A stretch of DNA of 64,000 nucleotides from Macrostomum lignano. Lineage: Eukaryota. The position numbers were made by a program, and so were the translations under genes. Where the stretch lies: the NCBI GenBank assembly GCA_002269645.1, contig NIVC01003776.1:1-64000 (forward strand). Reading direction: 5' to 3'. Below are positions 1,495 through 44,569 of this stretch, piece by piece; position 1 is the stretch's first letter, and every line of letters begins with the position of its first letter. Below the pieces are notes generated by a model. It was given only the letters and a program-made list of their open reading frames with translations. It searched no databases and was not told the DNA's origin.

Positions 1495-2024
1495 AAGCGC
1501 GAGCTACAGAATCAGGAAAGCGGTGAAGCGCGAACTACAGAGTCAGGAATAAGAGGATAAGCGCGCACTTCAAAATCAAGAGTTTGGGATAAGCGCGCAG
1601 TTTAGAATCATGAGTTTGGATAAGCGCGAACTTTAGAATCATGAGTTTGGATAAGCGCGCACTTTTGAATCATGAGTTTGGGATAAGCGCGCACTTTAGA
1701 ATAAAGAGTTTGGGATAAGCGCGCACTTTAGAATCATGAGTTTGGGATAAGCGCTCACTTTAGAATCAAGAGTTTGGGATAAGCGCGAACTTTAGAATCA
1801 AGAGTTTGGATAAGCGCGCACTTTAGAATAAAGAGTTTGGGATAAGCGCGCACTTTAGAATCTAGAGTTTGGGATAAGCGCGCACTTTGGAATCTAGAGT
1901 TTGGGATAAGCGCGCACTTTAGAATCATGAGTTTGGGATAAGCGCGCACTTTAGAATCATGAGTTTGGGATAAGCGCGCACTTTAGAATCATGAGTTTGG
2001 GATAAGCGCGCACTTTAGAATCAT
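1495..2024. repeat. 33-bp minisatellite downstream of Raptor
   Basis: Tandem unit GATAAGCGCGCACTTTAGAATCATGAGTTTGG(G), degenerate at the left end. Confidence 0.95.
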
Positions 2025-2140
2025 AGAAAACAGTAATTTGCTAGTCGCTTGACCCGTAGATTGACGCAAAAAAACTGAAAATAAAAAGCTCAAGCATTAT
2101 TTTAAAGAAATAAACCAACATAGCAGCAGCAGTGCTCAGC

Positions 2141-5100
2141 CTACAGACCTACAGATGAATGAGCGGAGTACAGCGACAAGCAGCTATCCGTAGTGCTCAA
2201 CGCTAGCATGGGTTTCAACGGATGAAAAGCTACAGAGAATGGCCTGGCAATCTGCTGCAGCAGAGCTTCGTTAGCTCGAACAGCGGCCAGTTGAAAGCCG
2301 CCGGTAAACGATCTGACCGATAAAGTGCAGTCGGCTGTACCGACAGCGTAAACTGGACAGCGCGGATGAGCGGCGAAGCACGTGACCTGCTGCGGCGGTT
2401 GCTGCTGCTGAGGCGGCTGGTGGCTTTCTAGGAATTGCTGACCAGCTCGGCGAAGGTCCCAAAGTCGAACCAAGCCGCTAGCTGTGCAGGTTAGCAGCTG
2501 ATCAGGGTTGCTCGGGTTCAGACAGGCGCCAAGTACCAGATCGCCTGCTGGACTGCTCATTGCTGCTGCACCGCTGTTAGAGACTGTTGGGTAAAATTGC
2601 GAAAAGTAACAGTTTAAAGTGTTTACTGCGTCAATTGATATTCTCTCCTATCTACTCTCCATATCGACTCGCCCTACCAACTCTCCCTATCTACTCTACC
2701 TACCTACTCTCTGTCTACTCTCCTACCTACCCTCCCTAACTAATCTCCCTGCCTTCTCTCCCTGCCTTCTCTCCCTACCTACTTTCCCTACCTACTCTCC
2801 CTGCCTACTCTCCCTACCTACTCTCCCTACCTACTCTCCCTACCTACTCTCCCTATCTACTCTCCCTACCTACTCTCCCTACCTACTCTCCCTACCAACT
2901 CTCCCTACCTACTCTCCCTACCAACTCTCCCTACCTACTCTCCCTACCTACTCTCCCTACCTACTCTCCCTGCCTACTCTCCCTACCTACTCTCCCTACC
3001 TACTCTCCCTACCAACTCTCCCTACCTACTCTCCCTACCAACTCTCCCTACCTACTATCCCTACTTACTCTCCCTACTTACCCCCTCCAACGGGCACAGC
3101 GTCGGCCTGCACGCTGCAGACGCAGCACTGATTAGCCGGCGCCAACGGATCGAAGCATTTCACAATTCCATCGTCGAACCCGGCAATCAGCCGACCTCGC
3201 CCGGCCGACTCGTCCGAATAAGCCAGATGAGTGCAGGCGGCCGACTCGCACGGCAGATCGACGCACCGACGCTCGGCGTGGGCGTCAATTAATCGCAGAA
3301 ATCTGGCGTGACCGCCGAACGCCAAGCCGGCCTGCTGTTGTTGATTCCAAGCCATCGCTCTAAGCCGATCTGGCAGGCCAACGAAAGCCGAGATCAACTG
3401 CGGACTGCTATTGTAGGGGCAGGCATAGTTGCGCCATAGACGAACGCAGCCGTCTGACCAGGCGCAGGCCAGTAAAGAATCTTCCGTATGCCAGTTTACT
3501 AGCTGAATATCTACTAGGAAATTGCCGCCGCTGCCGCCGCCGACCATGCCGCCGTGGGCGCCGAACGAGTGCGAATGATGCGCCGGGGAGCTGGTCTGAC
3601 GCGAATGATGCTGATGCTGCAGCGAGCCCTGGTGCTGCCTGGTGTGGCCACCGAGACTGCCGCTAGCTGTTGAAATTGAGGGAGATAATTATAGATTAGC
3701 CAATGACCAATGACCATTCTATTATAGATTAGCTAATGACCAATGACCATTCTATTATAGATTAGCCAATGACCAATGACCATTCTATTATAGATTAGCC
3801 AATGACCAATGACCATTCTATTATAGATTAGCCAATGACCAATGACCATTCTATTATAGATTAGCTAATGACCAATGACCATTCTATTATAGATTAGCCA
3901 ATGACCAATGACCATTCTTTTATAGATTAGCCAATGACCAATGACCATTCTATTATAGATTAGCCAATGACCAATGACCATTCTATTATAGATTAGCCAA
4001 TAACTAATGACAAATCTATTATAGATTAGCCAATGACCAATCTAACTAGCTCCACAATGACCAATCTAATTAGCTCTACAATGACCAATCTAATTAGCTC
4101 CACAATGACCAATCTAACTTGCTTCACAATGACCAATCTAACTAGCTCCACAATGACCAATCTAATTAGCTCTACAATGACCAATCTAATCAAAATCACA
4201 ATGACCAATCAAATTAGCTCCACAATGATTTGACCAATCTAATCAAAATCACAATGACCAATCAAATTAGCTCCACAATGACCAATCTAACTAGCACCAC
4301 AATGACCAATCTAATCAAATTTACAATGACCAATCTAATTAGCTTTACAATGACCAATCTAACTAGCTCCACAATGACCAATCTAATTATGTCCACAATG
4401 ACCAATCTAATTAAATTCACAATGACCAATCTAATTAGCTTCACAATGACCAATCTAAACAGCTCTTCAATGACCAATTTAATTATCACCACAATGACCA
4501 ATCAAATTAACTCCACAATGACCAATCTAACTAGCTCCACAATGACCAATCTAATTATAACCACAATGACCAATCAAATTAGCTCCACAATGACCAATCT
4601 AACTAGCTTCACAATGACCAATCTAACTTGCTCCACAATGACCAATCTAACTTGCTCCACAATGACCAATCTAACTAGCTTCACAATGACCAATCTAACT
4701 TGCTCCACAATGACCAATCTAATTAAATTTACAATGATCAATCTAAACAGCTCCACAATGACCAATCTAATTAGCTCCACAATGACCAATCTAGTTAAAT
4801 TCACTATGACTAATCTAATTAGCTCCACAATGACCAATCTAACTAGCTCCACAATGACCAATCTAATTAGCTCCACAATGACCAATCTAAACAGCTCCGT
4901 AAGAAACTCACTTCCAGCAGTTAGGCCGCCGCTAGACCGACGACTGCCGCCGGCGGAGCCGCCGCCAAAGGCCAGCAAGTTGACGCCTGACTCGGCATTG
5001 AAAGAGGCCAACCTACACAGATCAGGGTCCAGCACTTGTACGCTAGAATCGTCGCACAGCAATAACTGAGCCAACAAAGGATGGAAATGCAGGCTAACAG

Positions 5101-8100
5101 CCGGGGACTGCACAGTTCGGGTGCTTCGCAAAGCGAATTGTACTGAGCGACCGCCGCTACCAGCGGTTGCCAAGGCGACAGCGTCCTGAGCGGCCAGCCG
5201 ATGCAGACTATGCAATAGCAGGCAGCTGAGCTCGCGGCTTTGAAAATTAGCAGACAAAGGATCGGATTCCGTTGACAAGTCAGCTTGAGCTTGAGAAGCC
5301 ATCGGCCTAGCAAATTGTGCGCAACAATATTCGAATAGTTTAGTTGTCAAGGGCTCGTTCGATACAACTGACGCAGCCGCGGCGCTTCTTGAACTCCAGT
5401 CGGCAGTTGAATAACTTGTCGTCGCCTCGTTAGCGGCCCCGGCGCTGTCGCTTTGACGACGAACTAAACCGACTAGGCCAGAGCGTCGATTGCCGCCGGT
5501 TGCCCCTGGCGACGGGGAGCGTCGTCGACTGTCTAAATTATCCATCATGCCCAGTAGTATCCGGGTAGCAAACCGATTAGTAGAAATTGCTCCGGTTAGC
5601 GGAGTTGGCGGACTCCTACTGCTCAAATGATGATGATGCTGATGATGCTGCAGGCCTAGATGTCGCTGTAATTTAGGACTGCCAGGCACGCTGCCAGAGG
5701 TGGAATCCTCTGCTGGCCGACTCGAACTCAATACTGCTGCAGAGGATACTCTAGGAAATGTGCCATTGTTTGACAGTTTGGCATGAGTCTGCTGTTGCTG
5801 CTGCTGCTGCTGGCTCTGCTGCTGCTGTCCAGGCTTGGCGTATTGCTCCAGAATGCGTTGATCTTTGCGCAGTTTTTCAGATACACGAGAATAGACACTC
5901 TGGACTAGAGTGCCGGCCATCGACTGTACCTGTACATTGTTTCATTCATATGGGTTGACTTTTTTATAGTTTAAGAACTAGGTACGAGTATAAGCATTAT
6001 CTATAGGTAAACAGCGTGTATCCAATGTAAACAGACTGTATCTATGGGTAAACAGTGTGTATCCAATGTAAACAGACCGTATCTATGGGTAAACAGTGTG
6101 TATCCAATGTAAACAGTCTGTATCTATGGGTAAACAGCGTTTATCCAATGTAAACAGACTGTATCTATGGGTAAACAGTGTTTATTCAATGTAAACAGAA
6201 TGTATCTATGGGTTAACAGTGTGTATCTAATGTAAACAGTCTGTATCTATGGGTAAACAGTGTGTATTCAATGTAAACAGAATGTATCTATGGGTTAACA
6301 GTGTGTATTCAATGTAAACAGAATGTATCTATGGGTAAACAGTGTGTATTCAATGTAAACAGAATGTATCTATGGGTTAACAGTGTGTATTCAATGTAAA
6401 CAGTCTGTATCTATGGGTAAAAAGTGTGTATCCAATGTAAACAGTGTGTATCTAATGTAAACAGACCGCTGTATCTATGGGTTAACAGCGTGTATCCAAT
6501 GTAAACAGATTGTATCTATGGGTAAACAGTGTGTATCCAATGTAAACAGACCGCTGTATCTATGGGTAAACAGTGTGTATCCAATGTAAACAGTCCGTAT
6601 CTATAGGTAAACAGTCTGTATCTACAGGTAAACAGTCTGTATCTATAGGTAAACAGTCCGTATCTATAGGTAAACAGTCCGTATCTATAGGTAAACAGTC
6701 CGTATCTATAGGTAAACAGTCCGTATCTATAGGTAAACAGTCCGTATCTATAGGTAGACAGGCCGTATCCAATGTAAACAAGCCGTATCTACGGGTAAAA
6801 GTCCGTATCTACGGGTAAACAGACTCGCATCCAACATAAACAGCCCGTATCCAATGTAAACAGCCAGTTGCTAAGCACCCAAGCTACAAACCTGCGGCGC
6901 CGGGTCCCGATGCAGGAAGCAGAGAGATCGCCAGACCTGCTGATAGACGTTGCCAGATTTGAGCAGGCCGGCAAACGGTTGAGCAGTGGTTGGGCGTTTC
7001 AACCTGCGCCACCGCTCCGTATCCTCAATCTGTTGGATAACCACTGCAATCATTTCGTTCTCGAATAGTCGGGTAAAAGCGGCCAAAGCGCAGACTAATT
7101 CGCAGCGAACCAAAGCCGAGCAATCTGACAGAGACCGCTGAAGCAGTCTGAGTACAATAGTCTGATCATTGCTACCGCTTAGATCCGAAGCGCGCAGACT
7201 CTGCTGTTCGGCGCTATTGCTGCCACTAGAAGCAGAAGACTGTTGTTGCGCAGAAGCATTAGCACTGTTATTGACATTGTCCATATAAGCTGCTAAAGCG
7301 TGCACGCAAGCCGCTCGAACTTTCGGTTGTCGATCGTCTAGAAGAGGCTCGTAGCCGTAGGCGGCGCTGGACGAGTACAGAGCTTCGTAGGCCGAACTGC
7401 GGGCTCCGTGCGATCTGCCCGGCTCATAGTTGGCCCAGATCTTGGCTAGGCAGAACACTAGAAACAGGCGATAGGTGACAGCCGGCAGGGCTTGGTCCAG
7501 CCGGACAGCTGGATCGTCAAGGTGCTCCAGTATAGTGCAGATCAGATTGCTGCGAATGCAGATCTCCTTAGCTTCAACAGATCGATTCATTAATCTAGCT
7601 AGTACGAACGCGGCCATGCCTCTTATTGACAAAGATTTCGGTGTAGTTAAAGGAGCAGGATCTTGTAGTACGTTGATAAAATAGCGAATATTGTCCTCTT
7701 TGACTAGGTCAAGCACTAGATTAGTGGAATGCTCAACCGCTACTATCTTAGCCCAGATGAATACTAGTTCCTCTTTCATATCTTTGCCTCCGTTCAGCAG
7801 CTTCAAGATGTAGGGAAAGGTGCCTACTGATAGGGTCTGATACACCGCATCGGGACCCAGATCCAGGTAGGAGCACAGAAGCTTCAGCGCTTTAGGCCTG
7901 TAGTACTGGGATAGCAGCACCTGCGATAGGGTTATAAAATAAAGCAGATCATGATTTCTTAGAAACAAACCAAAACTCTAAATCTAGTCAAACAGACTCT
8001 CAATCTAGCTAAACAAAGAAGTTTAATATAGCCAAATAAAGACTAGCAATCTAGCCAAACAAAGACAAAAATGTTGCCAAACAGACTAACAATCTAGCCA

Positions 8101-11100
8101 AACAAAGACTACTAATCTATCTAAACAAAGACTTTTTATATAGCCAAATTAGGACCACTAATCTATCCAAACAAAGACTCTTAATATAGCCAAACAAAGA
8201 CTACCAATCTAGCCAAACAAAGACTACTAAGATAGCCAAACAGAACCTATCAATGTACTCGAACAAAGACTACTAATGTAGCTAAACAAACACTTTTAAT
8301 ACAGCCAAACAAAGACTATCGATCTGACTAAACAAAGAATTTTAATATAGCCAAACAAAGATTAAAAATGTAGCCAAACAAAGATTAAAAATGTAGCCAA
8401 ACAAAGACTACTAATCTAGCCAAACAGGAACTACCATCTACTCAAACAAAGACTACCAATACAGCTTAACCAAAGTGATCAATCTAGCCAAACCAAGACT
8501 ACCAATATAGATAAACCAAGACTATCATTCTATTGAGTTAAACAAAGGCTAAAAATCAATCTAACTCAGTTCCATATAAATACATACATCTATCTACATG
8601 AATGTACTAAACAATGCACAAACTAACCTGCAGCACAATGGGCAGATGCCAGGCGTCAGCTGGCGTCTTGCTGCCGGCAGATTTGAGCCAGACTTCAAAG
8701 CTAGCCAAATGATCGGCAAAAAACGAGCAAGTTTTGTAGGGCACCTGAAGCAGCGGGCCAGACTCCGGATCTGGCATAGTCGATTGATGCAGATGCTGCT
8801 GATGATGATGATGATGATACTGGTGGTGATGGTGCTGCTGTTGTTGCTGCTGTTGCGCCTGAGCCTCGTGATTGCTAATCCATCGATGCACGTCCGGTAA
8901 TTGGCGCATAAAATCGTCTACAACGTGATCCCAAGCCGACCACAGCGGATGCTTGTGCATGGGCGGCAGCAGCGGATGAGTCACTGGGGTGCAGCCGTAG
9001 CTGACGAGAACTCGTTCGGCTAGTAGGAAGTTGCGAAACAATGACGCCAATAGGGTGTCGTAACGGAACAGCCGGTGGAACAGGTCTCTGTGCGGATGGA
9101 TAGGGTAATTGTGAGTAAGAAGCGTTCATAAGACCCTTCGAGGGCCGATTTCTTATATAATTCAAAGCCGATTTTTTCCATATTTGAAGGCCGATTATGT
9201 CCAAATTTGAAGGCCGATTTCTTACATATTTGAAGGCTGATTTTCTTACATAATTGAAGATCGATTTTTACATAATTGAGGGCCGATTCAAAATAATTGA
9301 AGGCCGATTCTACATAATTAAAGGTCGGTTTTACATAATCGAGGGCTGATTTTTTACATAATTTAAGGCCGATTTTTACACAATGGAAGGCCGACTTCTC
9401 ACAAAATTGAAGGCCGATTTCTCACATAATTAAAGGCCGATTCTAAATAATTAAAGGCCAATTTATTACATAATTGAAGACCGATTCTTACTTAAATGAG
9501 GGCCGATTTTTTTACCTAATTGAGAGCCGATTTTTCACATATTTAAAAGCTTATTTTTACACAATAGAAGGCCGATTTCTTACATAATTGAATGCCAATT
9601 TCTTACATAATTGAATGCTAATTTCTTACATAATTGAATGCTAATTTCTTACATAATTGAATGCCAATTTCTTACATAATTGAATGCTAATTTCTTACAT
9701 AATTGAATGCTAATTTCTTACATAATTGAATGCCAATTTCATACATAATTGAATGCCGATTTCTTACATAATTGAATGCCAATTTCATACATAATTGAAT
9801 GTCAATTTCTTACATAATTGAATGTCAATTTCTTACATAATTGAATGCCAATTTCTTACATAATTGAATGCCGATTTCTTACATAATTGAATGCCGATTT
9901 CTTACATAATTGAATGCCGATTTCTTACATAATTGAATGCCGATTTCTTACATAATTGAATGCCGATTTCTTACATAATTGATTGCCGATTTCTTACATA
10001 ATTGATTGCCGATTTCTTACATAATTGAATGTCTATTTCTTACATAATTGAAAGCCGATTTAAAAAAAGAAAATTGGTTTGTAACATTCCAACAGCCTCA
10101 CCTAGGAATAGAATTATAAGCGATAGTATCCGTAACGGCAGTGAAAATCCAATTCAATTCTCCCAGCATAGATTTTCGCTCAGACAACTTGCCGGGTATA
10201 TTAGACAGCATAGCCAGAGTTAGATCTGGAGATAGCCTATTACTGTAGCGAATCCAGTACCAATGCAGAGCCGCCTTAATAGGCGTAGTCAGGCAGGCAG
10301 TAAACAAATCAGCAGGTAAGTCCGGATTCATTGGCAAAAATTCGTCAACACCGCAAGAGCACAATAATATCGAATTTTCCATGCTAACTTCGCTACCAGT
10401 TGAATAGGCGCACGAACTGCCGCCGCTGGATTTCTGCTGCTGATATTGTTCAGATTGTTCCCAATCTTGGCGGCGTCGCTCGCAGAACGCTTCGTAGGAT
10501 TTTAATACCTGCGTTTGGGGAGATTATTGGTATGAGGAACAGGTGAGATTATTTTGATTTGCAAATGACAATATTAGCTTTATTACCCAGATGTACACGT
10601 GAGATAATTGGCTTTATTAGCCGGATGTACAAGTGAGATAATTAGCTTTATTACCCGGATGTACAAGCGAGATAATTAGCTTTATTACCCAGGTGTACAA
10701 GTGAGATAATTAGCTTTATTACCCTGATTTACAGGTGAGATAATTAGCTCTGCTATCCGGATGTACAGGTGAGATAATTAGTTTTAATCACCTGAATGTA
10801 CAAGTGAGATAATTAGCTTTATTACCCGGATGTACAAGTGAGATAATTAGCTTTATTATCCGGATGTACAAGTGAGATAATTAGCTTTATTACCCGGATG
10901 TACAAGTGAGATAATTAGCTTTATTACCCGGATGTACAAGTGAGATAATTAGCTTTATTACCCGGATGTACAAGTGAGATAATTAGCTTTATTACCCAGG
11001 TGTACAAGTGAGATAATTAGCTTTATTACCCTGATTTACAGGTGAGATAATTAGCTCTGCTATCCGGATGTACAGGTGAGATAATTAGTTTTATTACCTG

Positions 11101-12405
11101 AATGTACAAGTGAGACAATTAACTTTATTACCCGGATGTACATATTTCAAAAAAGGTACACAGGAAGGTAAGCTAAACGCACCTGCCCTGCATTGTGACA
11201 GTCGATAACGTAGACGGAAGGCGAGCCAAGCCAGGACTGCAGGTCATACAAGGACAACGGTATGTACTGGGTAAAGTTTCGATTAAATACCCAAGTCTCG
11301 CCATTCTTAGTAGGCCTGGGCACTCCGTGGCCATTGAAATGGAACAGTATCCTGTCCTGTCTGGCGGTTCTACGCAAACTCAAACACTGCTTTTTCACTT
11401 CGTCGACAGTTGGATCGTTGCAAGTTTTATAACGAATTTTAGAATTCCACCGTTTGTATTGATTAACTAATAAGGTGGAAATTTCTTCAACCGCTTTGTT
11501 AGGATTCTTGCCCGAAGGATCGTACCAACAGTGTTGAACAGCGCTTGGTACCGGCTTCTGCACGTCCGGGGGGTCCGTGTCAACGTTCAGGCACAGGACT
11601 AGCAGTACGTTGGTGATTCGAACCTGGGTCCAAATGTTTGCGACAATAGGGGAAATCAATAATATTAAGGGCCCCTGAAGATGACTCTTCCTAAATAGGG
11701 GTGTGAAGGCGATTCTTCTGGGGATTATGAAGGCGATTCCTCTGGGATTATGAAGGCGATTCCTCTGGGGATTATGAAGGCGATTCCTCTGGGGATTATG
11801 AAGGCGATTCCTCTGGGGATTGTGAAGGCGATTCCTCTGGGGATTGTGAAGGCGATTCTTCCAGAGGGTGTGAAGATGATTCTTCTGGGGTGTGAAGATA
11901 ATTCTTTTGAGGTATGAAGGCGATTCTTCCAGAGGGTGTGAAGATGATTCTTCTGGGGTGTGAAGATAATTCTTTTGAGGTATGAAGGCGATTCTTCCAG
12001 AGGGTGTGAAGATAATTCTTTTGAGGTGTGAAGGCGATTCTTCCAGAGGGTGTGAAGATGATTCTTTCCAGAAGTTTTGAACGTGATTCCTGAGTAGAAT
12101 ATAGTCCAAATAATTTCCGACTGTGCTTAAGTTACAGATAATTATTATAAACGAGTCAGAAATGCCTCTAAGAAATTATCGATGTAGAAACAAACTAAAA
12201 TTTCTTAAGAGTTGTAGACGCTAACCTTAGTCCCGTAACGCCAACTCTCCGCTATGCCTTCTACGCCGTTGGTTTCTTCGTGCAAATGGGGCGACGCAAA
12301 GGCTAAGGGAATGTTCCACTCTGGCAGGCTGCGGGCCAAGCCAATGGGATAGCAGGCCAATTCCGCTTCGTCCACTCGTTTGGCGTCTTCTTCGTACAAG
12401 TGCAT
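2141..12405 (-). CDS. RPTOR: Regulatory-associated protein of mTOR (Raptor), 8 exons, 1520 aa
   Basis: Exons on -: 12226-12405, 11183-11623, 10102-10508, 8628-9087, 6892-7920, 4912-5929, 3082-3666, 2141-2583. All introns are GT-AG, phases are consistent, total 4563 nt ending in TAG. Motifs: WNIPLAF, LCLNVDTDPPD, FNGHGVPRPTKNGE..VFNRNFTQYIPLSLYDLQSWLGSPSVYVIDC (RNC/caspase-like domain), LPADLFTACLTTPIK, ELNWIFTAVTDTIA, ASLFRNFLLAER, LPIVLQVLLSQ, HEAT/ARM region and C-terminal WD40 region. Confidence 0.97.
2645..3078. repeat. 13-bp minisatellite, Raptor intron 7
   Basis: (CTACTCTCCCTAC)n. Confidence 0.95.
3688..4897. repeat. Compound 33-bp then 24-bp minisatellite, Raptor intron 6
   Basis: ATTAGCCAATGACCAATGACCATTCTATTATAG to about 4032, then ACAATGACCAATCTAATTAGCTCC. 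The two units share CAATGACCA. Confidence 0.95.
6004..6863. repeat. 20/21-bp minisatellite, Raptor intron 5
   Basis: GTAAACAGTCTGTATCTATGG alternating with GTAAACAGTGTGTATCCAAT, then homogeneous 21-mers. Confidence 0.95.
7985..8530. repeat. Degenerate ~23-bp minisatellite, Raptor intron 4
   Basis: AGCCAAACAAAGACTACTAATCT-like units. Confidence 0.85.
9135..10065. repeat. 23-bp minisatellite, Raptor intron 3
   Basis: TTGAATGCCGATTTCTTACATAA; degenerate on the left, homogeneous on the right. Confidence 0.95.
10540..11140. repeat. 34-bp minisatellite, Raptor intron 2
   Basis: GTGAGATAATTAGCTTTATTACCCGGATGTACAA. Confidence 0.95.
11700..12065. repeat. ~24-bp minisatellite, Raptor intron 1
   Basis: GAAGGCGATTCCTCTGGGGATTAT and variants. 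Confidence 0.9.
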
Positions 12406-12564
12406 GCGGGTACTGCTCGGGGCGGGAAATGGGGATTAACTATTTGTGACGAGAATGTATTTAGACAGACCTATCACATATGACCCCAATTATTAAAATA
12501 TGATGCCAACTCCCTAGAATCCCTGGCAAAGACCCAAAATCACTCATGAATTAAAATACTTTGC

Positions 12565-13415
12565 TATGATCCAAACTAACTGGCTATGATCCAAACTAAC
12601 TGGCTATGATGCAAACTAACTGACTATGATCCAAACTAACTGGCTATGATCCAAACTAACTGAATATGATCCAAACTAACTGGCTATGGTCCAAACTAAC
12701 TGGCTATGATCCAAACTAACTGGCTATGATCCAAACTAACTGGCTATGATCCAAACTAACTGGCTATGATCCAAACTAACTGACTATGATCCAAACTAAC
12801 TGGCTATGATCCAAACTAACTGGCTATGATCCAAACTAACTGGCTATGATCCAAACTAACTGGCTATGATCCAAACTAACTGGCTATGATCCAAACTAAC
12901 TGGCTATGATCCAAACTAACTGGCTATGATCCAAACTAACTGGCTATGATCCAAACTAACTGGCTATGATCCAAACTAACTGGCTATGATCCAAACTAAC
13001 TAGCCATGATCCAAACTAACTGGCTATGATCCAAACTAACTGGCTATGATCCAAACTAACTGGCTATGATCCAAAGTAACTTATGATCTAACTGATCCAA
13101 ACTAACTGGCTATGATCCAAACTAACTGGCTATGATCTAAACTAACTGGCTATGATCCAAACTAACTGGCTATGATCCAAACTAACTGAATATGATCCAA
13201 ACTAACTGGCTATGGTCCAAACTAACTGGCTATGATCCAAACTAACTGGCTATGATCCAAACTAACTGGCTATGATCCAAACTAACTGGCTATGATCCAA
13301 ACTAACTGGCTATGATCCAAACTAACTGGCTATGATCCAAACTAACTAGCCATGATCCAAACTAAATGGCTATGATCCAAACTAACTAGCCATGATCCAA
13401 ACTAAATGGCTATGA
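12565..13415. repeat. 20-bp minisatellite upstream of the Raptor start codon
   Basis: (CTATGATCCAAACTAACTGG)n; a variant block recurs at about 12655 and 13185. Confidence 0.95.
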
Positions 13416-14238
13416 ACCTAAATCAAATAGTTTTGAAAGAATTTAAATTCGAAAAAAGTCAACATATCATGGAGAAAATACAATACAAAATATACAAACA
13501 GTTCTTCCTATTTTCTTTACCTGAAGAAAAGGTGAAAAGGAGGTCAACCAATAGGGTAGTGTAGGCATTCAAAACAAAGAAAAAAACAAAACAAACAAGT
13601 TAAACAAAGACACACAGTCAAAACAAAGAGTTGTCAGTAAGCGTTATAAATAATAATAAAGACAAAAAACAGGAACAGCAGTTACTGCGAGTCGAGCGGT
13701 GGCAAAATATTGAATCAAATACTACGAGTACTGTACTGGTTGTGACGAGCAGTGTCTTCAGGACCATCTGCTCATATCTATAAGCAATGCTTCAGGACCT
13801 TCTGCTCATAGCTATAAATGACGCTTAGGGATCAAGCAAATGGACACAGAATATGTTATGAAAAACAGGGGTTAGCAGTGTAGTGAATAGTGCAGCTACA
13901 AAAATGGTGGGATAAAGAAATAGGGTATTAAATAGAAAAGCATAGCGCATAGTTTCATAAAAACCAATCAATAGAATCACGAAGTTAACAAATTAATTTT
14001 TAAAAAGATGTAAGCAAACAGAAGCTAATGGAAAAGATAGTGCAGTTCTAATGAAACCAAACCAATGAAAAAATACAATTAACAAAGATATTGTCCCGCG
14101 ACGGTAGCAAAGTACTTTGTGCAAAATTGGCTACTGCAAGTAATACAAAAAAATCTTGTAAATATTTCATTTCATTTCGGTAAAAATTTTAAATAAAAAA
14201 TAACACTGTACCAGAGCAAAAGAAAGAGAGCAATGAAA

Positions 14239-14448
14239 CACACATGCGCAACCCCTCTGATTTACACTGGCCGTGAGTCTCACTTATAAAAGAAGCAAAC
14301 AAAAATTAACGTACTTAATAAAGGTAAACGGCAGGAATAACTACTACTGTAATTTGTAGGCTAAATGCCTCGTCGTCTAATTAGTGGGCATTTTTGCGAC
14401 TTATCTTGGCTGGGCCCTCGCCAGCCGGCCGGGTGTTGCGCATGTATG
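14239..14448. mobile_element. 210-bp hAT-type MITE (copy A) carrying a 28S rRNA fragment
   Basis: TIRs CACACATGCGCAAC (14239-14252) and GTTGCGCATGTATG (14435-14448). The flanking 8-mers CAATGAAA / CGATGAAA match 7 of 8 (TSD). Same TIR as the element at 18827-20899. Confidence 0.85.
14323..14386 (+). other. Degenerate 28S rRNA fragment (helix 69-71 region); not a functional rRNA gene
   Basis: GGTAAACGGCAGGAATAACTACTACTGTAATTTGTAGGCTAAATGCCTCGTCGTCTAATTAGTG versus the eukaryotic 28S sequence recalled from memory, GGTAAACGGCGGGAGTAACTATGACTCTCTTAAGGTAGCCAAATGCCTCGTCATCTAATTAGTG. Confidence 0.85.
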
Positions 14449-14529
14449 CGATGAAATGTCAATTGTAGTCCAGAATGTACTTTTCTAACGACCTTTAGTT
14501 TTATTAATTAATAATTTATTGATTGACAA

Positions 14530-17500
14530 CTAAGTGAGACGCAACTCAAAACAGCCGAGATGCGGCTCTTCAAATTGGATACACTTTTGCTGGAGAAAAT
14601 TTCTAACAACAGGCCTCAATACTGGACCGCTATTAGAGTGCTTCCCGTGTCCAGTAATCACTTTAATAGTCTTTAATCCGCTGCTTGAACTACTATTCAT
14701 AGTAGTCTTTAAAGCTTGTATAGCTTCGCTAGCGTTCATGCCGTGCAAATCCAACTGTTTCTCCCTGGACCCGAACAGTCGGATTCCGAGGTTATTGCCG
14801 CTGCTTCTAGTTGCCATGCCAACCAACTCAGCCCGTTCCTGTCGCTCCTGTTGAGCTAACGAGCCAGCCTGGCGCATATAATGGCCCTGAGCTCGTGGAT
14901 CTTTAGCGTAGGCCGCCTTAGTTAAATAATCGCGTCTTTGAGCACGGTAATCAGCGCTAACTAGGTTCAAATGATCGAATAGGCCTCCTAATTTAGTAGC
15001 TTCATCAGAAGACGTAGATGAGGAGGCTGCGGCTGCAATCGGTGATGGAGACTTCTTGAATACCGCGGAGCTAGCAGCAGCCGCGCCGTCAGGCTCTGTG
15101 GCCGGCTCAAGGCCGCACTCTAACAAAGTGGCAAAGGCGGCTTCATAGCTATTGCCACAGTCAGCTAGTAGAGAAGCGGCCGCGTCCTCAGATAGGCCTG
15201 GAAAAGCTCTAAACAGTCGGTCAAGATTAATCCGACTCGATAATGGATCGCTTGCTCTCCACCGGCTGTCTGATAGGGCTGGCGAAGAGTAAGACGATAC
15301 GGGTTGGCGCTGCTGCTGCTGCTGCTGCGCAGACACGCCAATATGGTCAAGAAAGGCCAAATAAATCAGCGACAAAACTTCATCTGGCGGAGTCCAATCG
15401 GCTAAGAAATCTTCGCCAACTTCAGATAATAAATTGCCAACAGTTGCATTGTTTTTGGAGTTCAATTTTTTACCAAATCGTTCATGCAAAGCCATTAAGT
15501 TGGTCTTAGTAATAAATCCTGATAGTGCCTGCAAATGTTTTGTAGCGAAATATCCAGGTTTTTAAGCTGTCTCTAACAGCTGCTATTGACTCTCATTAGT
15601 GACCTTACCTGATGATAAGGGACAATAGCCACAAGTGAGTCACAGGTGACACAAGACACAACAGGCACAAAGCGCATTCACCAGGTAACACCAGACACAA
15701 CAGTCACAAAGCACATTCATCGGGTGACTCCAGACACAACAGTCACAAAGCACCTTCACCAGGTGTTTCAAGACACAACACGTGACAACAGTCAAAGCGC
15801 ATTCACCAGGTGACACCAGAGCTCAGACTAAACAGTCACAAAGCACATTCACAAACTTGGATACTTTTTGTTATTGCCGATCAGGTAGAAAATTGTTAGA
15901 GTTTTAATTAAAGCTTTTACCTGATCATCGCTATACATATCTTTAACCACCTCGGCAGCGACTGGACTTTTAGAAGCCCAATTAGCTACATACTTAGGAC
16001 TTTCTTCGAGTCCTACAGAGAATTCCACACCAGATTGTTGCTGTTCCACAATTTCAGACACCAACAATGACGGAGAGCATTCATTAGAGACTAAAAGCGG
16101 AGCCATGCCAGCACCATCATCTTCAACTGGTAGCTTAGCATCGCCTTTATAAGCCTCAGATAATTGATTCAACTGTTCGATAGTGGCCGTCAAATCGTTC
16201 TCATTAGCTCGATACATTTCAATCAGCACTTCGGCATCAAAGTCGGGAAATATGCTAGCTAGATAAGCGGAATTGTCGTCCTCTTCTATGGCTGCGACGC
16301 GATCCGCGACTAAACAGACCTGAGCGTCGGCAACGACCTCATTCGAGCACAATGATGAAGCAGCTAGATCAGCATCAACACCAACACTATTGCTTGGAGT
16401 CTGTTGAGGCCGAGTCTCGAACAGACTGCGCCATTCGTTGACGTGAGCAACGCTTCGAAGGCAATCGTTAAATGATTGAACCATTTCAGGCTGACGATAT
16501 TGATCCATTGGCTGGTGTCTTGCCTGCAGTGTTATTTTTTAATAGAAAATATCAGTAAATAACAAGAGCAAACTTTTTTGATCTTCATGTTCAAATACCA
16601 TCATTATATGCATGATCATGTCTTTGGTCATATGCATGATCATGTCTTTGATCATATGCATGATCATGTCCTTGATCATATGCATGATCATGTCTTTGAT
16701 CATATGCATGATCATGTCCTTGATCATATGCATGATCATGTCTTTGATCATATGCATGATCATGTCCTTGATCATATGCATGATCATGTCTTTGATCATA
16801 TGCATGATCATGTCCTTGATCATATGCATGATCATGTCCTTGATCATATGCATGATCATGTCTTTGATCATATGCATGATCATGTCCTTGATCATATGCA
16901 TGATCATGTCTTTGATCATATGCATGATCATGTCCTTGATCATATGCATGATCATGTCTTTGATCATATGCATGATCATGTCTTTGATCATATGCATGAT
17001 TATGTCTTTGATCATATGCATGATCATGTCTTTGATCATATGCATGATTATGTCTTTGATCGTATGCATGATCATGTCTTTGATCATATGCATGATCATG
17101 TCTTTGATCATATGCATGATTATGTCTTTGATCATATGCATGATCATGTCTTTGATCATATGCATGATCATGTCCTTGATCATATGCGTGCAATTAATAT
17201 TCCTCTCCAACAAGGGGGAACCCCAACTTTCTTATTTGCTAAAATTTGCCCGAATCATTAACATTGCCAAACGTATTAACTTTCTGATAAACAGGGCTAA
17301 TAAAACTAATAGATATAAATAGCATAGCTTGAAATAAACCCTCTACCACACACAAACACATGGTGACCCACCTGAGATCTAGTATGAACGCTGTTAACCT
17401 TTGGCAATTGTAAAACTTTCAGGCAATACACCGTATTACCATGGCGCGAATCGTTAACCAGCGCGTTGGCCAATTTAGCTCCGACATTGCAGACTTCGTT

Positions 17501-18643
17501 GGGCAGCTGCTCAACGCCATCTTCGTCATCAACTAAACGCAATTGTTCAAAAATTTTGCGCATTTCTTGCAGTTTCTTTTTAGGCACAGAGTGCACATTG
17601 CGTTGGGCTAATTGGACAACATCGAATTTCCAATACGTATTCGGTTCAGTTACTATGCTTAGATAATTATGAGTAGCGGCCAGAGGTAAATATGATACAA
17701 ACTCGCTCGTTTTAACATTTGTATTGTCGATAATGACAATGGGCTTGCGATCCAACATGCAACTGCTTACTAAAATTGGTAGTAGGTGCACAATAACTTC
17801 ATGTAATTGGCTGGCTTTTATAGTAAAAAACAGGTTGAAATACCTCGAAACTACTACTGGTCATCTGATGATTCGGTTAGATACTCATTGCTCATTGAAC
17901 TGGATACTACTGCAATACCTTGTACCGAAATGTCACGGTACAAGTCGCTAAAAAGTTGTCAAAGAGTCATCTAAGAGTTCAATTTAAGGTGTTTTGTTGT
18001 CTGCGACTCCACTCTATTTAGTCTACTTAAGTCAGTAGAAAGTTGAGCACTAGCAGAACAATTCTTGGACGACTTTTTGGCGGCCCTAGAGTCGCTAGAG
18101 TCAATGGCGAGTTGTTTGCAATGACTCTTTAGCGATTCTGGTCACGTTAACATTTTGAATGGGATGCTTATTGAACTGGATACTACTTATTGCTTAATAC
18201 AAGTGAGCATATGCTCACATCAATCTATACTTAAAAATAGATAAATTAGAAACTTTTGAAAAATAAGTTGCTTACCTTTATTTCTACATTGAACATGAGC
18301 ATTTGAGATTAATGTTGGTTTGTAGTCATACTCTCCTGTTGGACTATAGAAATAATCATCTGCACTACATATGCAACATGCATTGTTGCCAAATTCAGCC
18401 AAAATAGATCTAAAATTAAATTATTATACAATTATATTAATCAAATAGAAATCAATGTCAGTGTGTTAACTAATGCAAAAAAATATAAATCTATTTTAAA
18501 CTTTCTTACTTTGCAAGTGTTGATTTTCCACTACCAGGCAAGCCTCTCAAGATAATAAGTAGGTTGTAATTCTGTCCAAGATACAATTCAATGATAGGTA
18601 ATATTGGATGTCTGAATTTTTCTTGCTGCCCTTTTGATTCCAT
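14530..18643 (-). CDS. N4BP2: NEDD4-binding protein 2-like (P-loop polynucleotide kinase + CUE + DUF1771 + Smr endonuclease), 5 exons, 755 aa
   Basis: Exons on -: 18510-18643, 18276-18409, 17372-17769, 15921-16523, 14530-15528. GT-AG introns, phases consistent, 2268 nt. Motifs: LIILRGLPGSGKST (Walker A), SADDYF, IIDNTN, EPNTYWKF..LAQRNVHSVP, CUE-like YLASIFPDFD and LFRAFPGLS, Smr LDLHGMNASEAI...VITGHGKHS..PVLRPVVRNFL. Confidence 0.92.
15640..15852. repeat. ~39-bp degenerate tandem repeat, N4BP2 intron 4
   Basis: CACAAAGCACATTCACCAGGTGACACCAGACACAACAGT-like units. Confidence 0.8.
16605..17186. repeat. 24-bp palindrome-rich minisatellite, N4BP2 intron 3
   Basis: (GATCATATGCATGATCATGTCYTT)n. 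Confidence 0.95.
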
Positions 18644-18923
18644 TGTGGCTATAGCTAGACAGGAAAGGGTTTGATATTATGATTGTCTTGTCAATAGTTT
18701 AAAAAGTTATAAACTTTACTCATCTGGAATTAAATGGCAAGTATATTGTATAAAAAGCCAAAAATTCATGTTAAAGTATAAACAAGAAATGTATAAAAGA
18801 ATAATTTCACTTCTAAACATGTATAACATACATGCGCAACTTCTGAAATTACGCTGGCCTTGCGACTTAGTTTTCGATCAAAAATGCGACTTACCTATGT
18901 AAAAAAGCTAAACAAAGAATTGT

Positions 18924-18988
18924 GGGTAAACGGCAGGAGTAACTATGACCATATTTTAAAGGCTAAATGCCTCGCCAGCTAATTAGTG
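18924..18988 (+). other. Degenerate 28S rRNA fragment (helix 69-71 region); not a functional rRNA gene
   Basis: Against the recalled 28S sequence the first 26 nt match 25/26 (GGGTAAACGGCAGGAGTAACTATGAC) and the last 27 nt match 24/27 (GCTAAATGCCTCGCCAGCTAATTAGTG); the central 12 nt are diverged. Confidence 0.9.
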
Positions 18989-20344
18989 CAGATTTCGTGG
19001 TTCTTACTACAGCTAATCAGTATATCATAGTGGCGGCCTGAGGCAATTAGTAATGATGACAATGAGTAAAGACATGTAATGACAAAAGTCATGATTCATG
19101 AATGTCTAGAAGTAAGTGAATTGAATACAGTGTGGCCTATAGCTCAAGAATAATTTCACTTGCTAGACGATTTGGCATGGAAGATGAGAGCCCTGATTCA
19201 GATGGCTCATCAGATGCAGAATACAAATCCAGTAGAGATACAAGCTGTGAAAACCCACAGATTTTGAAACCACTGAATTCCAATTTCCGGAACTATTTTG
19301 CATAGATTCTTAAATTTGAAGTCATGCTCAAACAAAAACTAGTTAACAGTTAGGAAAAAGGCAAACAAGGATGGGAGTAAATGCATGTTAAATTAAGATT
19401 TGAGGCCTTTGCAAATTCTCTCCTTTCCTCAATCTTCTCATCCTCTTTTTCTTTTCTCTCTCATCCCTCATCCCTTCTCTCTTTCCTCTCCTCTCTCCTC
19501 TCTTTCCTCCTCTCTTATCTCTTCTGTCTCCTGTCTACATTCTTATCTCTCCTCTCGTCTCTCTCCACTTCACTCTACTCTCTCATCTTATCTCTCCTCT
19601 CGTCTCTCTCCACTCAACTCTCTCATCTCATCTCTCCTCTCTTCTCTACTCTCTTATCTCTCCTCTCTTCACTCTCCTCTTATCTCCTCCTTATCCTCTC
19701 TTCTCTCGTCTACTCTCTTATCTCCTTTCTTCTCTCCTCTTTCCTCTTTCCTCTCTTTTCTGATCTCATCCATCATCATATCTTTCCTCTTTCCTCTCAT
19801 CTCTCTCATCTCTCTCCTCCCTCAGCTTTTCTCTCATCTTCTATCTTTTCTCCCATTGCATCGCTCGCCTCTCCTCTGTTTGCTTATCTCCAATCTTCTA
19901 TTCCCTCTACTTTGAAGTAAGAAAATATGCACACATTTTTGCTGAAGATAAGAGGAGAGAAGAGGGCATTGAGGAGAAAGGGTAGAGAGAAAAGGGGAGA
20001 AAGGAGAGGGGAGAAGAGAGGAGAGTAAAAATGAAAGGAGAGAGAAGAGGGAAAAGGGGGAGAGAGAGAAGAGGGGAGGCAAGGTAGAGAAGAAGAGAGA
20101 GATGAGAGTTGAAGAGACACCAACCTTGTTAGTTAGAAAGTTTCAAAGAACCCGAGGGGCGAGGGCCAGATAGAGGGGCTTCGCGAGCTGGACTTTGCCG
20201 ACCCCTGCTCCGGAGTTAAAGAAATCAATGGGAAACTGTTACATAGGCTGCTGATTTCAAAGATCTTGTCTGTGGTTGAAGGCTTCTATTCTGTTTTTTT
20301 GCTCTCCTGCCACACTTGCACCTACTACCCCTTGATCGCCTCTG

Positions 20345-20712
20345 ATTGCGACTTACTTCCCTCTTATTGCGACTTAGTTGCTCCTTTTGCGACTTACCTA
20401 ATCCTTTTTGCAACTTAGTTGCTCCTTTTGCGACTTACCTAATCCTTTTGCGACTTACCTAATCCTTTTGCGACTTGACCTAATCCTTTTTGCGACTTAG
20501 TTGCTCCTTTTGCGACTTACCTAATCCTTTTGCGACTTGACCTAATCCTTTTTGCGACTTAGTTGCTCCTTTTGCGACTTACCTAATCCTTTTGCGACTT
20601 ACCTAATCCTTTTTGCGACTTACCTAATCCTTTTTGCGACTTACCTAATCCTTTTGCGACTTGACCGAATCCTTTTTGCAACTTAGTTGCTCCTTTTGCG
20701 ACTTACCTAATC
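20345..20712. repeat. Subterminal tandem repeat of hAT copy B
   Basis: TTTTGCGACTTACCTAATCC and TTTTGCGACTTAGTTGCTCC units. Confidence 0.9.
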
Positions 20713-21197
20713 ATTTGTGCAATTTAATTTGCTTCTGCTGCAACTTGTTTTTCTTTTGCTTCACCATTTTACTTCCCTATATTGCTTTTTCCTCTTGCAT
20801 TTTTTCGTTTTTGGTCAACTCGATTTTGCGACTTACCCTGGTCCACCACAATTCACGGTGGCCGGATCGGCCAGCTCGGCCAGCAGTTGCGCATGTATGA
20901 TGTATAATATATAAGCTTGAACTATATTGCAAATTTTTATTAAAGAGATACTTAAGATTTAGCTTTATAACTTAACTTTTATATTAAAATAATATCTATA
21001 TAATATTATAATGGCTTTATATGCCAAGTAAATAATTATGTATACTTGCTTCCAAAACTAGATTCTGTTAAACAATTAAGTATACATAGAGCATATTTTA
21101 TATACTGCTAATAAATACGATACTAAGAGGAAATCAAAGTGAAATAAAGTAAACCTCATATATAATGATATTAATATTAAAATGCATTAGATATTAG

Positions 21198-26900: not shown

Positions 26901-29900
26901 ACACTAAGTGCATTAGTGATTGGGTATGAACCGCACACTCTGTGCCTTGGTGGTTGGGTGTGAACCGCACACTCAGTGCATTGGTGATTGGTGTGAACCG
27001 CACACTCAGTGCATTGGTGATTGGGTGTGAACTCTTAATGATTTTTAGAAAGAGAAGAATAATTTTTCAACTGGTTTTGCGCTCTTTGATTCAATCTTCG
27101 TGAGCAAAGCATCATGAAATTAGACGAAACAAATTGTGTAATTATATTTAGAGATTAAAAACACACGTATTTAAACAGGCAACAAAATGCAGCCCTGGTT
27201 AGCAGACTTGGCTACCTGGTTAATCAAGAAGACGATGCCACTGCAGCATTGGTGACTCAGCGATTCAACTTCATCCGAGCTCTGGAGTCCGGCCGCCAAC
27301 TTGCCAGAGACATTGGCGGCTCAGATCCGGAACGAATGTCGCCTGGTCGCATTGCGGATCGACTTGCGTCGGAATTTGGCGTCGTTAGCAACGGTCCAGT
27401 TGTCATGGAGATTGAAGAATCAATTAAGCCGGAGAAATATCCGTTAATGGCGGCTGTAGACAGAGGCAGCGTTGAGAGGCACCGTGGAAAGGTGGTACAC
27501 CTCACCTATGAGGGCGAGCTGAATAGTCTGGTAAATTATTAATTACAATACAATCTTTTCATAGCAACAAAAATTTATGCTGTCTTATAAGTTTGGCTGT
27601 TAAATCTGCTTTCATACTTGCGTTGCAGTGGGAGCTGATATGATAAGTCAGCTTCTACCCTCTCTCGGTCAGCTTCTACCCTCTCCCAGTCAGCTTCTAC
27701 CCTCTCTCGGTCAGCTTCTACCCTCTCCCAGTCAGCTTCTACCCTCACTCGGTCAGCTTCTACCCTCTCCCAGTCAGCTTCTACCCTCTCCCAGTCAGCT
27801 TCTACCCTCTCCCACTCAGCTTCTACCCTCTCCCAGTCAGCTTCTACCCTCTCCCATTCAGCTTCTACCCTCACTCGGTCAGCTTCTACCCTCTCCCATT
27901 CAGCTTCTACCCTCTCCCACTCAGCTTCTACCCTCTCCCAGTCAGATTCTACCCTCTCCCATTCAGCTTCTACCCTCACTCGGTCAGCTTCTACCCTCTC
28001 CCAGTCAGCTTCTACCCTCTCTCGGTCAGCTTCTACCCTCTCCCAGTCAGCTTCTACCCTCTCTCGGTCAGCTTCTACCCTCTCCCAGTCAGCTTCTACC
28101 CTCACTCGGTCAGCTTCTACCCTCTCCCAGTCAGCTTCTACCCTCTCCCAGTCAGCTTCTACCCTCTCCCACTCAGATTCTACCCTCTCCCATTCAGCTT
28201 CTACCCTCTCCCAGTCAGCTTCTACCCTCTCCCAGTCAGCTTCTACCCTCTCCCAGTCAGCTTCTACCCTCTCCCACTCAGCTTCTACCCTATCTCTGTC
28301 CGTCAGAAATGATTCGAAAGCAGCTCCCTGCTCCTCGCAACCATCCCACAGGCCGATGCCGCTGACTGCTCGCACGTGACACTCCTTCTAGCTGGCAAAG
28401 GCGTCACGTTCGATACTGGTGGACTGAGCCTAAAAACCGGTGGCAGCATGGTCGGCATGCACCGGGACAAGTGTGGTGCAGCAGCGGTTGCCGGCTTGTT
28501 CAGCCTGCTTGCCCAGCTGCGTCCGCCAAATCTGACGGCTCGCTGCAGCCTCGACCTGGTGCGAAACTCCATCGGGTCAGGGAGCTACTCGCCCGACGAG
28601 GTCATCGTCAGCCGGGCCGGTCGTCGAGTTCGCGTGGTGAACACCGACGCCGAAGGCAGAATGATTCTAGCTGATCTGCTGTGTCTGCAGCGTGAGCGAG
28701 CGTTGGAGCTTGCGGAACCGAGCAGAGCCAGGCTGTTTACCGTGGCGACCCTCACTGGCCACGCTGTGCTAGCCTACGGCCAGGGATATTCCATAGCGAT
28801 GGACAATGGGCCGGCAAGAAGGCTCGGAGTGGCCGCAAAGTTACAAGCTGCTGGCGATCTAATTGCCGATCCGTTTGAGGTGGAAATGCAAAGTCAATTT
28901 TTTATTCGTTAATTTTTTCTATTAGAGAAACTGCTCGCTGATTTGTTAAGAAGATAACTGATCGCTGATTGGTTAAGAAGAGAACTGATCGCTGATTGGT
29001 TAAGAAGAGAACTGATCGCTGATTGGTTAAGAAGAGAACTGATCGCTGATTGGTTAAGAAGAGAACTGATCGCTGATTGATTGAGAAGAGAACTGATCGC
29101 TGATTGGTTGAGAAGAGAACTGATCGCTGATTGGTTGAGAGGAAAAATGATCGCTAATTGGCTGACAACAGAGCTATATTCGACTACTTTATGAACCCTC
29201 GCTATTTAGATTTCCACTGTCAGACGCGAAGACTGGGACTTTGTTCGGTCATCAGGTCCATACGAGGAGCTACTGCAGTGCAATCCGCAACCCAGTGCAG
29301 CCACCCGCGTGGCCATCAATTTCCGGCCGCATTCTTTGCCGCAGCTTCCGGTTTAGATAAGGTACAGATATTGATTAGCGTAATAACTGAATTGCTTCGA
29401 CAGTATTGTAGTTATATAGTTGCAAAATCTTGAATTATAATTTGAATGTATATATGAAGCTACGGTCGGAATTCCAGTACTTCGTGTACTCGCTTGACCG
29501 TACGCTTAAGCGAGACGTTTTTAAATTGGGTAATTGACGTAAGTGGGCGTATATCAGATGTGTTTATTGTTAAACTTAGAAATTGGTAATAAATACCTCG
29601 TGTACTTTGGTTGCAAGTGTGGCAAATATTAATATATATTATATTACGTGCAGTCGTGGTCCTGCCGTTCAAGCTATGGTTTTATTATAATTATGCCTAG
29701 TGGATTTAACTGGTTTGATTTAGATAGTGGCTGCCTCCAGGTCCCTGATTTTCTCTAATTCTAGTACTTAGCGATCAAAGAATAAAAGAAGGAAACCAAA
29801 AATTTATTTACTAAAAGGATATAAAACCGGTAGCAGTCTTACTGTACCTAGTATTCCCCGACTTTATCCCCCGATGTTACCTCTTATTCTTTAAGTTCGA

Positions 29901-36244: not shown

Positions 36245-36327
<83 letters not shown>

Positions 36328-44429: not shown

Positions 44430-44569
44430 GCAAGTATTCGGTGGCATCGCCGCCTTTCATGATAATAATTTTGCCCAATCCAACTGCAGCACATTACTTA
44501 ATTTAATAATTAAGCATTTACTTAACTATCTGGTATCCATGCAGTAAATGCACCAGCTAATTCTCCCAC

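Follow-up and report, generated by a model that had tools for sequence, protein, structure and literature searches.

The window analyzed here is a 64-kb stretch of DNA from Macrostomum lignano (contig NIVC01003776.1, positions 1 to 64,000). It contains two DNA transposon copies, designated e1 and e2, each of which carries a fragment of the 28S ribosomal RNA (rRNA) gene close to its left end. The two copies flank a minus-strand gene at 14530-17791 that we take, from the translations of its open reading frames (ORFs), to be N4BP2-like, with kinase, CUE and Smr domains. e1 occupies 14239-14448 on the plus strand and lies 82 bp downstream of the N4BP2-like stop codon (14449-14530), and e2 occupies 18827-20899, also on the plus strand, upstream of the same gene. 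Two minus-strand AATAAA signals lie between the N4BP2-like stop codon and e1, which puts e1 at the 3′ end of the transcript or a short way past it; any read-through RNA would include the 28S fragment in antisense orientation. e1 and e2 are best read as two diverged copies of a single non-autonomous class II family that possesses terminal inverted repeats (TIRs) and makes 8-bp target site duplications (TSDs).

Both copies end in a common 14-bp TIR, CAYACATGCGCAAC. In e1, a TIR pattern search places the left TIR, CACACATGCGCAAC, at 14239-14252 on the plus strand and the right TIR at 14435-14448, where it reads CATACATGCGCAAC on the minus strand. The two ends of e2 are identical to each other, with CATACATGCGCAAC at 18827-18840 on the plus strand and again at 20886-20899 on the minus strand. 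With up to two mismatches allowed, the TIR pattern has four sites in the entire window, and these are exactly the ends of e1 and e2. e1 is flanked by CAATGAAA (14231-14238) and CGATGAAA (14449-14456), which agree at seven of eight positions, and e2 by two perfect copies of ATGTATAA (18819-18826 and 20900-20907; 8/8). An earlier note on this DNA had described the same elements, TIRs and TSDs, and both a reading of the sequence and a script reproduced its coordinates and its 7/8 and 8/8 counts. The TSDs and the flanking sequences differ between the two copies, and because the TSDs differ, the chimera of transposon and 28S sequence has evidently transposed and stayed mobile.

e1 conforms to the description of a MITE (miniature inverted-repeat transposable element): it is 210 bp long, is bounded by TIRs and a TSD, and contains no ORF of note. 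Its termini also pair with each other in a single-stranded DNA fold (z=-2.85). e2 is a non-coding element of 2073 bp. No Pfam domain was detected in its ORFs, a protein search with the ORF that spans its 28S-derived block returned no relatives, and no transposase-like ORF is present in the window among ORFs of at least 80 amino acids. The absence of Pfam domains from the e2 ORFs and of a transposase-like ORF from the window indicates that both elements are non-autonomous.

e1 is organized as a left arm of 84 nt, a 28S-derived block of 64 nt, and a right arm of 62 nt. Comparison of the two elements by blastn within the window aligns their left 155-171 nt at 67% identity (E=1.6e-15) and their last 30 nt at 87% identity, and the e1 right arm can be aligned to the final ~75 nt of e2, with one copy of the 9-mer TGCGACTTA inside this match. 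The same approach detected no third copy or fragment of the family in the 64-kb window. TGCGACTTA, a subterminal repeat of both elements, has 17 exact matches in the window against 0.43 expected, all of them inside e1 or e2 and all on the plus strand. One lies in the e1 right arm (14395-14403), two lie in the e2 left arm (18861-18869 and 18885-18893, together spanning 18861-18893), and 14 lie in the e2 right arm, mostly as a tandem array. This array consists of about 17 copies of a 20-nt unit, TTTTGCGACTTACCTAATCC, at 20363-20716 and belongs to a plus-strand right subterminal region (20347-20835) that also contains outlying copies of TGCGACTTA. The e2 interior (19416-20112) comprises CT-rich low-complexity sequence at ~19416-19900 opposite GA-rich sequence at ~19946-20112, which together form an imperfect inverted repeat. 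In Rfam, this interior resembles MIR7533, a plant family, but only below threshold (39 bits, where the gathering score is 230), which we take to be an effect of low complexity, and a sub-threshold match to RUF3 is likewise an artefact of low-complexity or tandem-repeat sequence.

The 28S-derived block lies on the plus strand at 14323-14386 in e1 (start at 14322 or 14323) and at 18924-18988 in e2 (start at 18924 or 18925), where it runs from GGGTAAACGGCAGGAGTAACTATGAC to GGCTAAATGCCTCGCCAGCTAATTAGTG. It is offset from the left tip by 84 nt in e1 and by 97 nt in e2 and has the same orientation in both, confirming the shared relative position reported previously. In e1, the block is divided into sub-block A (14323-14343), a diverged centre (14344-14358), and sub-block B (14359-14386). 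Since the Rfam model of large subunit (LSU) rRNA does not pick up a fragment as short as 65 nt, the identity of the block was checked against real ribosomal DNA (rDNA) contigs. The canonical 28S 64-mer, GGTAAACGGCGGGAGTAACTATGACTCTCTTAAGGTAGCCAAATGCCTCGTCATCTAATTAGTG, occurs exactly in at least 120 metagenome contigs, and the three contigs with this 64-mer that were tested in Rfam all proved to be LSU_rRNA_eukarya, with scores of 1810-2672 bits. Against LSU contigs, blastn alignments of the elements cover 65-66 nt with ~80% identity (E=2e-7 for e1), a result that upholds the 28S identity that had been proposed for the block. When the whole window is compared with the same contigs, only the e1 and e2 blocks match rDNA.

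The two halves of the canonical 28S sequence match the window only at 14323-14386 and 18925-18988. Chance similarity is ruled out as an explanation, as two colinear blocks match 28S with 1-3 mismatches and 0 such matches are expected in shuffles. The 28S homology does not extend beyond the block on either side, and Rfam detects no rRNA in the window at the gathering threshold and none within 14200-21000 at E<=10. In the Escherichia coli 23S rRNA, the block corresponds to ~1896-1959, which covers helices 69-71 (the helix-69 loop UAACUAU occupies 1911-1917 in standard numbering), and in the annotated 23S gene the homologous stretch occupies ~1890-1978.

This part of the 28S gene is a target of several specialized mobile elements. 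The captured stretch lies inside the 84-bp duplex used as an in vitro target of R2 (PMC12180492) and reaches from about -40 to +25 relative to the R2 site. It also holds the TTAA site of Pokey, with R2 and R5 inserting a few bp away and R4 inserting 28 bp downstream (PMC3849761), in agreement with the earlier note, which had named this 28S stretch as the insertion site of Pokey and R2. An intact R2 or Pokey target is ruled out, since the block centre around the insertion sites is its most degraded part. Two of five pairs of the helix-69 stem are left in either copy, and helix 71 loses its 3′ strand at the block end. As read from the sequence, the block is without rRNA secondary structure and is not a functional piece of rRNA. 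Two further candidates were rejected: an rDNA orphon or pseudogene, because the block lies inside TIRs in both copies and the flanks differ, and a retroposed SINE28-like vehicle, because the elements have 14-bp TIRs and 8-bp TSDs and lack a tail.

Several features of the family are typical of the hAT superfamily. The TSDs are 8 bp long (PMC3517528, PMC3014272), the 14-bp TIR falls within the hAT range of 5-27 bp, the lengths of 210 and 2073 bp lie below ~4 kb (PMC3517528), and both ends contain subterminal repeats, with TGCGACTTA providing putative BED-domain sites (concept from PMC10368747). However, the tips read CACAC or CATAC (CAYAC) and depart from YARNG, a hAT terminal motif that is typical rather than absolute (PMC3014272), having a pyrimidine in place of R at position 3 and a C in place of G at position 5. 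By its TSD and TIR lengths, its size and its subterminal repeats, the family thus appears hAT-like. Its placement in the superfamily is tentative, because the tip departs from YARNG and no transposase partner was found. The hAT label applied earlier fits the former four features and does not fit the tip. At the subgroup level, Buster TSDs follow the consensus nnnTAnnn and Ac TSDs follow nTnnnnAn (PMC3517528, PMC10368747). ATGTATAA fits both patterns, while CAATGAAA and CGATGAAA, with TG at positions 4-5 and A or G at position 2, fit neither fully. Two TSD sites are too few for a consensus, and the earlier assignment to the Buster/Charlie branch is not supported by them.

An enzyme from another superfamily that makes 8-bp TSDs (P, Merlin, MULE, Zisupton or Novosib) is possible, although hAT appears the better guess; this alternative concerns the enzyme and not the 28S capture. 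P-type elements start with CA, make 8-bp TSDs and contain internal transposase-binding repeats, and they count in favor of a non-hAT enzyme, as does the failure of CAYAC to follow YARNG at positions 3 and 5. On the other side, hAT far outnumbers every other family that makes 8-bp TSDs in animals. In a survey of Pack-TIRs, 208 of the 370 elements were hAT (PMC8277862). The 14-bp TIR, the size below 4 kb, the AT-rich e2 TSD with a central TA and the asymmetry of the subterminal repeats are also what is usually seen in hAT elements (PMC3517528, PMC10368747).

Two departures from the 28S sequence are common to both copies: GGCGGGA has become GGCAGGA, and GCCAAATG has become GCTAAATG. The altered bases are A in place of G at block position 11 and T in place of C at position 39. 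The same orientation, the same relative position and these two shared changes point to a single acquisition by the ancestor of both copies. The most probable explanation, to which we assign a probability of roughly 70%, is that the family progenitor took up about 65 bp of the 28S gene as filler during repair and that the block has been a passenger. The most likely route would be template switching, in which filler DNA is copied during repair of a double-strand gap following excision or a break, with rDNA as an abundant donor. The e1 block lies exactly between sequences homologous to the left and right arms of e2, as would be expected if filler had been placed at a repair junction. Afterwards the chimera would have kept its mobility and spread, through a transposase supplied in trans from another locus that would recognize the 14-bp TIR and probably TGCGACTTA as well. 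The block itself would most likely have travelled along without a role. Filler acquisition through template switching in gap repair was reportedly proposed for Ds-type derivatives by Rubin and Levy in 1997. Gap filling and template switching with microhomology have likewise been used to explain capture by Pack-TIRs (PMC8277862), and rDNA modules are commonly picked up by transposable elements (TEs), with most of them presumed neutral (PMC10946416).

The two copies may be related through either of two histories. An e1-like element may have arisen from an e2-like one by deletion, or e2 may be an e1-like element swollen by the expansion of low-complexity and minisatellite sequence; the second history is plausible because minisatellites fill most introns in the window. 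The earlier note had viewed e1 as an internal deletion of the longer type. Its junction does lie just after the block, near a GATTT/CATTT microhomology, but the two copies are only ~67% identical over the left arm, so that e1 did not come straight from e2 by deletion and the microhomology is weak evidence.

The departure of the tips from YARNG is joined by several other observations that weigh against filler capture by a hAT-like progenitor followed by passive carriage. The comparison comprises two copies only, which makes "family-wide" and "single capture" extrapolations; the description of the block as a fixed module of the family likewise goes beyond what two copies can support. The two changes regarded as shared and derived could be states of the host rDNA. 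The present-day junctions lack convincing microhomology, and the mechanism is not readable from them. Finally, conservation of the block exceeds the expectation for a strictly neutral passenger. In the comparison of e1 with e2, the TIRs are identical at 13/14 and 14/14 positions with no gap columns, the left arm at 45/68 with 18 gap columns, sub-block A at 20/21, the block centre at 8/15 and sub-block B at 25/28, each with no gap columns, and the right arm at 41/48 with 26 gap columns. With boundaries that were chosen after the data had been seen, and in only two copies, sub-blocks A and B together (45/49) exceed both the left arm (Fisher p=0.0015) and the centre (p=0.002). The block is also free of indels, whereas its flanks contain many. 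When the whole block is compared with its neighbors, the difference is 83% versus 74% identity for substitutions only (p=0.2) and reaches p=4e-5 when indels are treated as differences.

Retention of the block for a function is only hinted at by this pattern. Selection may have kept the sub-blocks for a role in cis, for example as sites for the DNA-binding domain of a partner transposase or for a host nucleolar or rDNA-binding factor, although we regard this as unlikely. Such a role would account for the excess identity of sub-blocks A and B, for the lack of indels over 64 nt where the arms have 18 and 26 gap columns, and for the retention of the block by the 210-bp e1 despite the loss of nearly everything else. 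The block also sits in the zone of 100-200 bp per end that hAT-type elements usually need for transposition: Tol2 needs ~200 bp at its left end and Tag1 ~100 bp, and the BED domains of Hermes bind subterminal repeats, mainly at the left end (PMC10368747). However, the right arm is equally conserved at its aligned positions, TGCGACTTA is absent from the block, no partner protein is known, and the excess rests on post hoc boundaries in two copies. A test of whether the block is more conserved than its neighbors had been put forward in the earlier note, together with the suggestion of functional retention; in its substitutions-only form it gives no significant difference, and what speaks for the suggestion is the post hoc 45/49 and the comparison that counts indels. 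Less probable again is that the sub-blocks, GGTAAACGGCAGGARTAACTA and GGCTAAATGCCTCGYCRKCTAATTAGTG, may constitute a functional module, either as the site recognized by a partner transposase whose present or former target is this 28S hot spot, as it is for Pokey, or as a dispersed copy of the R2, R5, R4 and Pokey landing site for rDNA-specific elements or nucleolar factors. A TIR-like 14-mer beside the captured stretch in the 28S gene would then be a trace of rDNA origin. The related proposal of an rDNA-targeting ancestor finds no evidence here, as both copies lie in ordinary genic surroundings with no rDNA nearby.

The 14-mer in question, GACGCGCATGAATG, begins at the last base of the block and resembles the right TIR, GTTGCGCATGTATG, in colinear orientation with three mismatches. 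It is the single best TIR match in the whole 3.3-kb LSU gene (positions 2143-2156 of LSU sequence L009, compared with window positions 14435-14448 and 20886-20899). About 0.26 matches this good are expected per LSU gene, the coincidence of position and orientation is estimated post hoc at ~1e-3, and local-alignment shuffles with no constraint on position give p=0.01-0.1. Comparison of the left ends with the 28S bottom strand yielded only the marginal TIR-like match. The likeness may be accidental, or the capture may have left it behind through microhomology or the use of a pseudo-end. It is very unlikely that the family was born from, or shaped by, GACGCGCATGAATG, with a transposase pseudo-end or a repair microhomology drawing the neighboring 28S sequence into the element. 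The quality of the match, its abutment on the block and its right-TIR orientation favor such an origin, but the unconstrained shuffles give modest p-values, the observation was made post hoc, and genuine right-arm sequence with a subterminal repeat intervenes between the block and the right TIR, over 48 nt in e1 and 1897 nt in e2, which pseudo-end use does not predict. We give even less credence to the idea that the blocks stay 28S-like through repeated gene conversion by, or re-capture from, the rDNA array. The IGS-derived repeats inside Pokey, which derive from intergenic spacer (IGS) sequence of the rDNA, evolve in concert with rDNA (PMC3849761) and offer a precedent; the sub-blocks match 28S at 19-20/21 and 24-25/27 positions, closer than an arm divergence of ~34% predicts, and the two shared differences are compatible with host rDNA states. 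Yet the block measures only 64 nt, its centre has diverged strongly and differently in each copy where conversion tracts should homogenize it, each copy has private differences inside the sub-blocks, and no rDNA lies near either copy.

Filler capture in a single progenitor also places e1 and e2 close to a known class of elements. Pack-TIR or transduplicating elements, such as the Pack-MULEs of plants and Pack-hAT-N8_XT in Xenopus, resemble e1 and e2 in having intact ends and TSDs, a short host-derived fragment inside, more than one copy with distinct TSDs, and capture by gap filling and template switching (PMC8277862). In e1 and e2, the 64-65-nt 28S block lies between intact ends and is flanked by family-specific arms. 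Pack-TIRs carry pieces of protein-coding genes or untranslated regions, whereas the piece in e1 and e2 comes from the 28S rRNA gene. In animals, Pack-TIRs seldom exist in several copies, with only 4 multicopy cases among the 370 elements from 100 animal genomes (PMC8277862), and e1 and e2 amount to two copies. Related in form is Mar, a hAT MITE of Drosophila willistoni, which, like Ds-type deletion derivatives with filler, is short and non-coding, has TIRs of 11-14 bp and 8-bp TSDs, and has an interior unrelated to its autonomous parent; such elements arise by internal deletion or abortive gap repair. The Mar tip CAG(G/A)G agrees with YARNG, and Mar has been tied to Buster through a relic autonomous copy, in contrast to e1 and e2, which have the tip CAYAC and no known partner.

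Other mobile elements are associated with rDNA in different ways. Pokey and its MITE relative mPok, piggyBac elements of Daphnia, are cut-and-paste elements with a MITE family and internal rDNA-derived sequence, as e1 and e2 are, and the 28S stretch in e1 and e2 holds the Pokey target TTAAGGTAGCCAAATG (PMC3849761). However, Pokey carries IGS and internal transcribed spacer repeats rather than 28S gene sequence and inserts into 28S at TTAA, whereas e1 and e2 have 8-bp TSDs, lie outside rDNA and hold the target stretch inside the element. Neither copy shows the rDNA-specific insertion of Pokey or R2: both lie in non-rDNA, and the window contains no rRNA gene. The 28S-derived SINE28, short interspersed elements (SINEs) derived from 5S rRNA, and the Cassandra and Ajax terminal-repeat retrotransposons in miniature (TRIMs) also contain a module derived from an rRNA gene (PMC10946416). 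SINE28 and 5S-type elements move via RNA, and the 5S module has a clear role as a Pol III promoter; e1 and e2, in contrast, are DNA transposons whose module has no known promoter activity, and they show none of the retroposon features (absence of TIRs, an A-rich or simple-repeat tail, a variable TSD).

A 2024 review lists rDNA-carrying TEs as SINEs and TRIMs with 5S promoters, SINE28, and Pokey with IGS-derived repeats only, and includes no cut-and-paste element with a 28S gene fragment (PMC10946416). This table is in line with the earlier remark that no cut-and-paste element carrying this site was known. As no literature report of such an element was found, the example appears to be new, while the kind is known, namely a non-autonomous TIR element with a captured host fragment that has spread. 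A search for further copies with the pattern GGTAAACGGCAGGA-N(30-45)-GCTAAATGCCTCG gave 0 matches in metagenome, viral and prokaryote contigs, collections that do not include the host genome.

If the 28S block was acquired as filler, the family adds one more entry to the rDNA-carrying TEs, alongside 5S promoters, SINE28 and the IGS repeats of Pokey, and one more to the rare multicopy Pack-TIRs of animals. Repeat maskers and rRNA filters will flag such copies as LSU rRNA fragments, and the copies could serve as ectopic targets of rDNA-specific elements. If the block instead proved to be conserved above background genome-wide, the family would represent a DNA transposon that has recruited a piece of the most insertion-prone 28S site as a working part, and a true module could make the family the second DNA transposon lineage tied to the rDNA niche, after Pokey. 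Overall, the locus most likely records a neat but fairly ordinary sequence capture of modest interest.

The remainder of the window is, by its sequence, eukaryotic and animal-like. Its minus-strand Raptor gene (mTOR partner) contains an exon whose bit scores are 205 with human RAPTOR, 172 with yeast Kog1 and 171 with Arabidopsis RAPTOR1, and the best match of this exon in the protein collection is 38% identical. The introns of Raptor (within 1555-13415) and most other non-coding sequence are packed with long minisatellite arrays that have units of 13-53 nt in up to 300 copies. A plus-strand exon at 28313-28912, which we take by eye to be M17 leucyl aminopeptidase-like (motif GKGVTFDTGG), is directly preceded by a 21-nt minisatellite at 27646-28291. 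The region 35000-45100 is locally duplicated; tandem arrays of 18-nt and 22-nt units are interleaved with its exons and reappear from one copy to the next. Several of these exons presumably encode WSC-like domains, as judged by eye (for example, 37866-38222, 38436-38800, 41210-41605 and 41800-42150), and the segments 39764-40072 and 44195-44503 have identical translations. A dispersed repeat of ~300 bp is present in three copies that are 81-89% identical (398-700, 46929-47203 and 53607-53886); on its minus strand it contains a tRNA B-box-like sequence, GGCTCGATTCC, which makes a SINE family of tRNA origin its probable identity. The final stretch of the window, 60175-64000, is a 3.8-kb array of CACACAGAGATCA.

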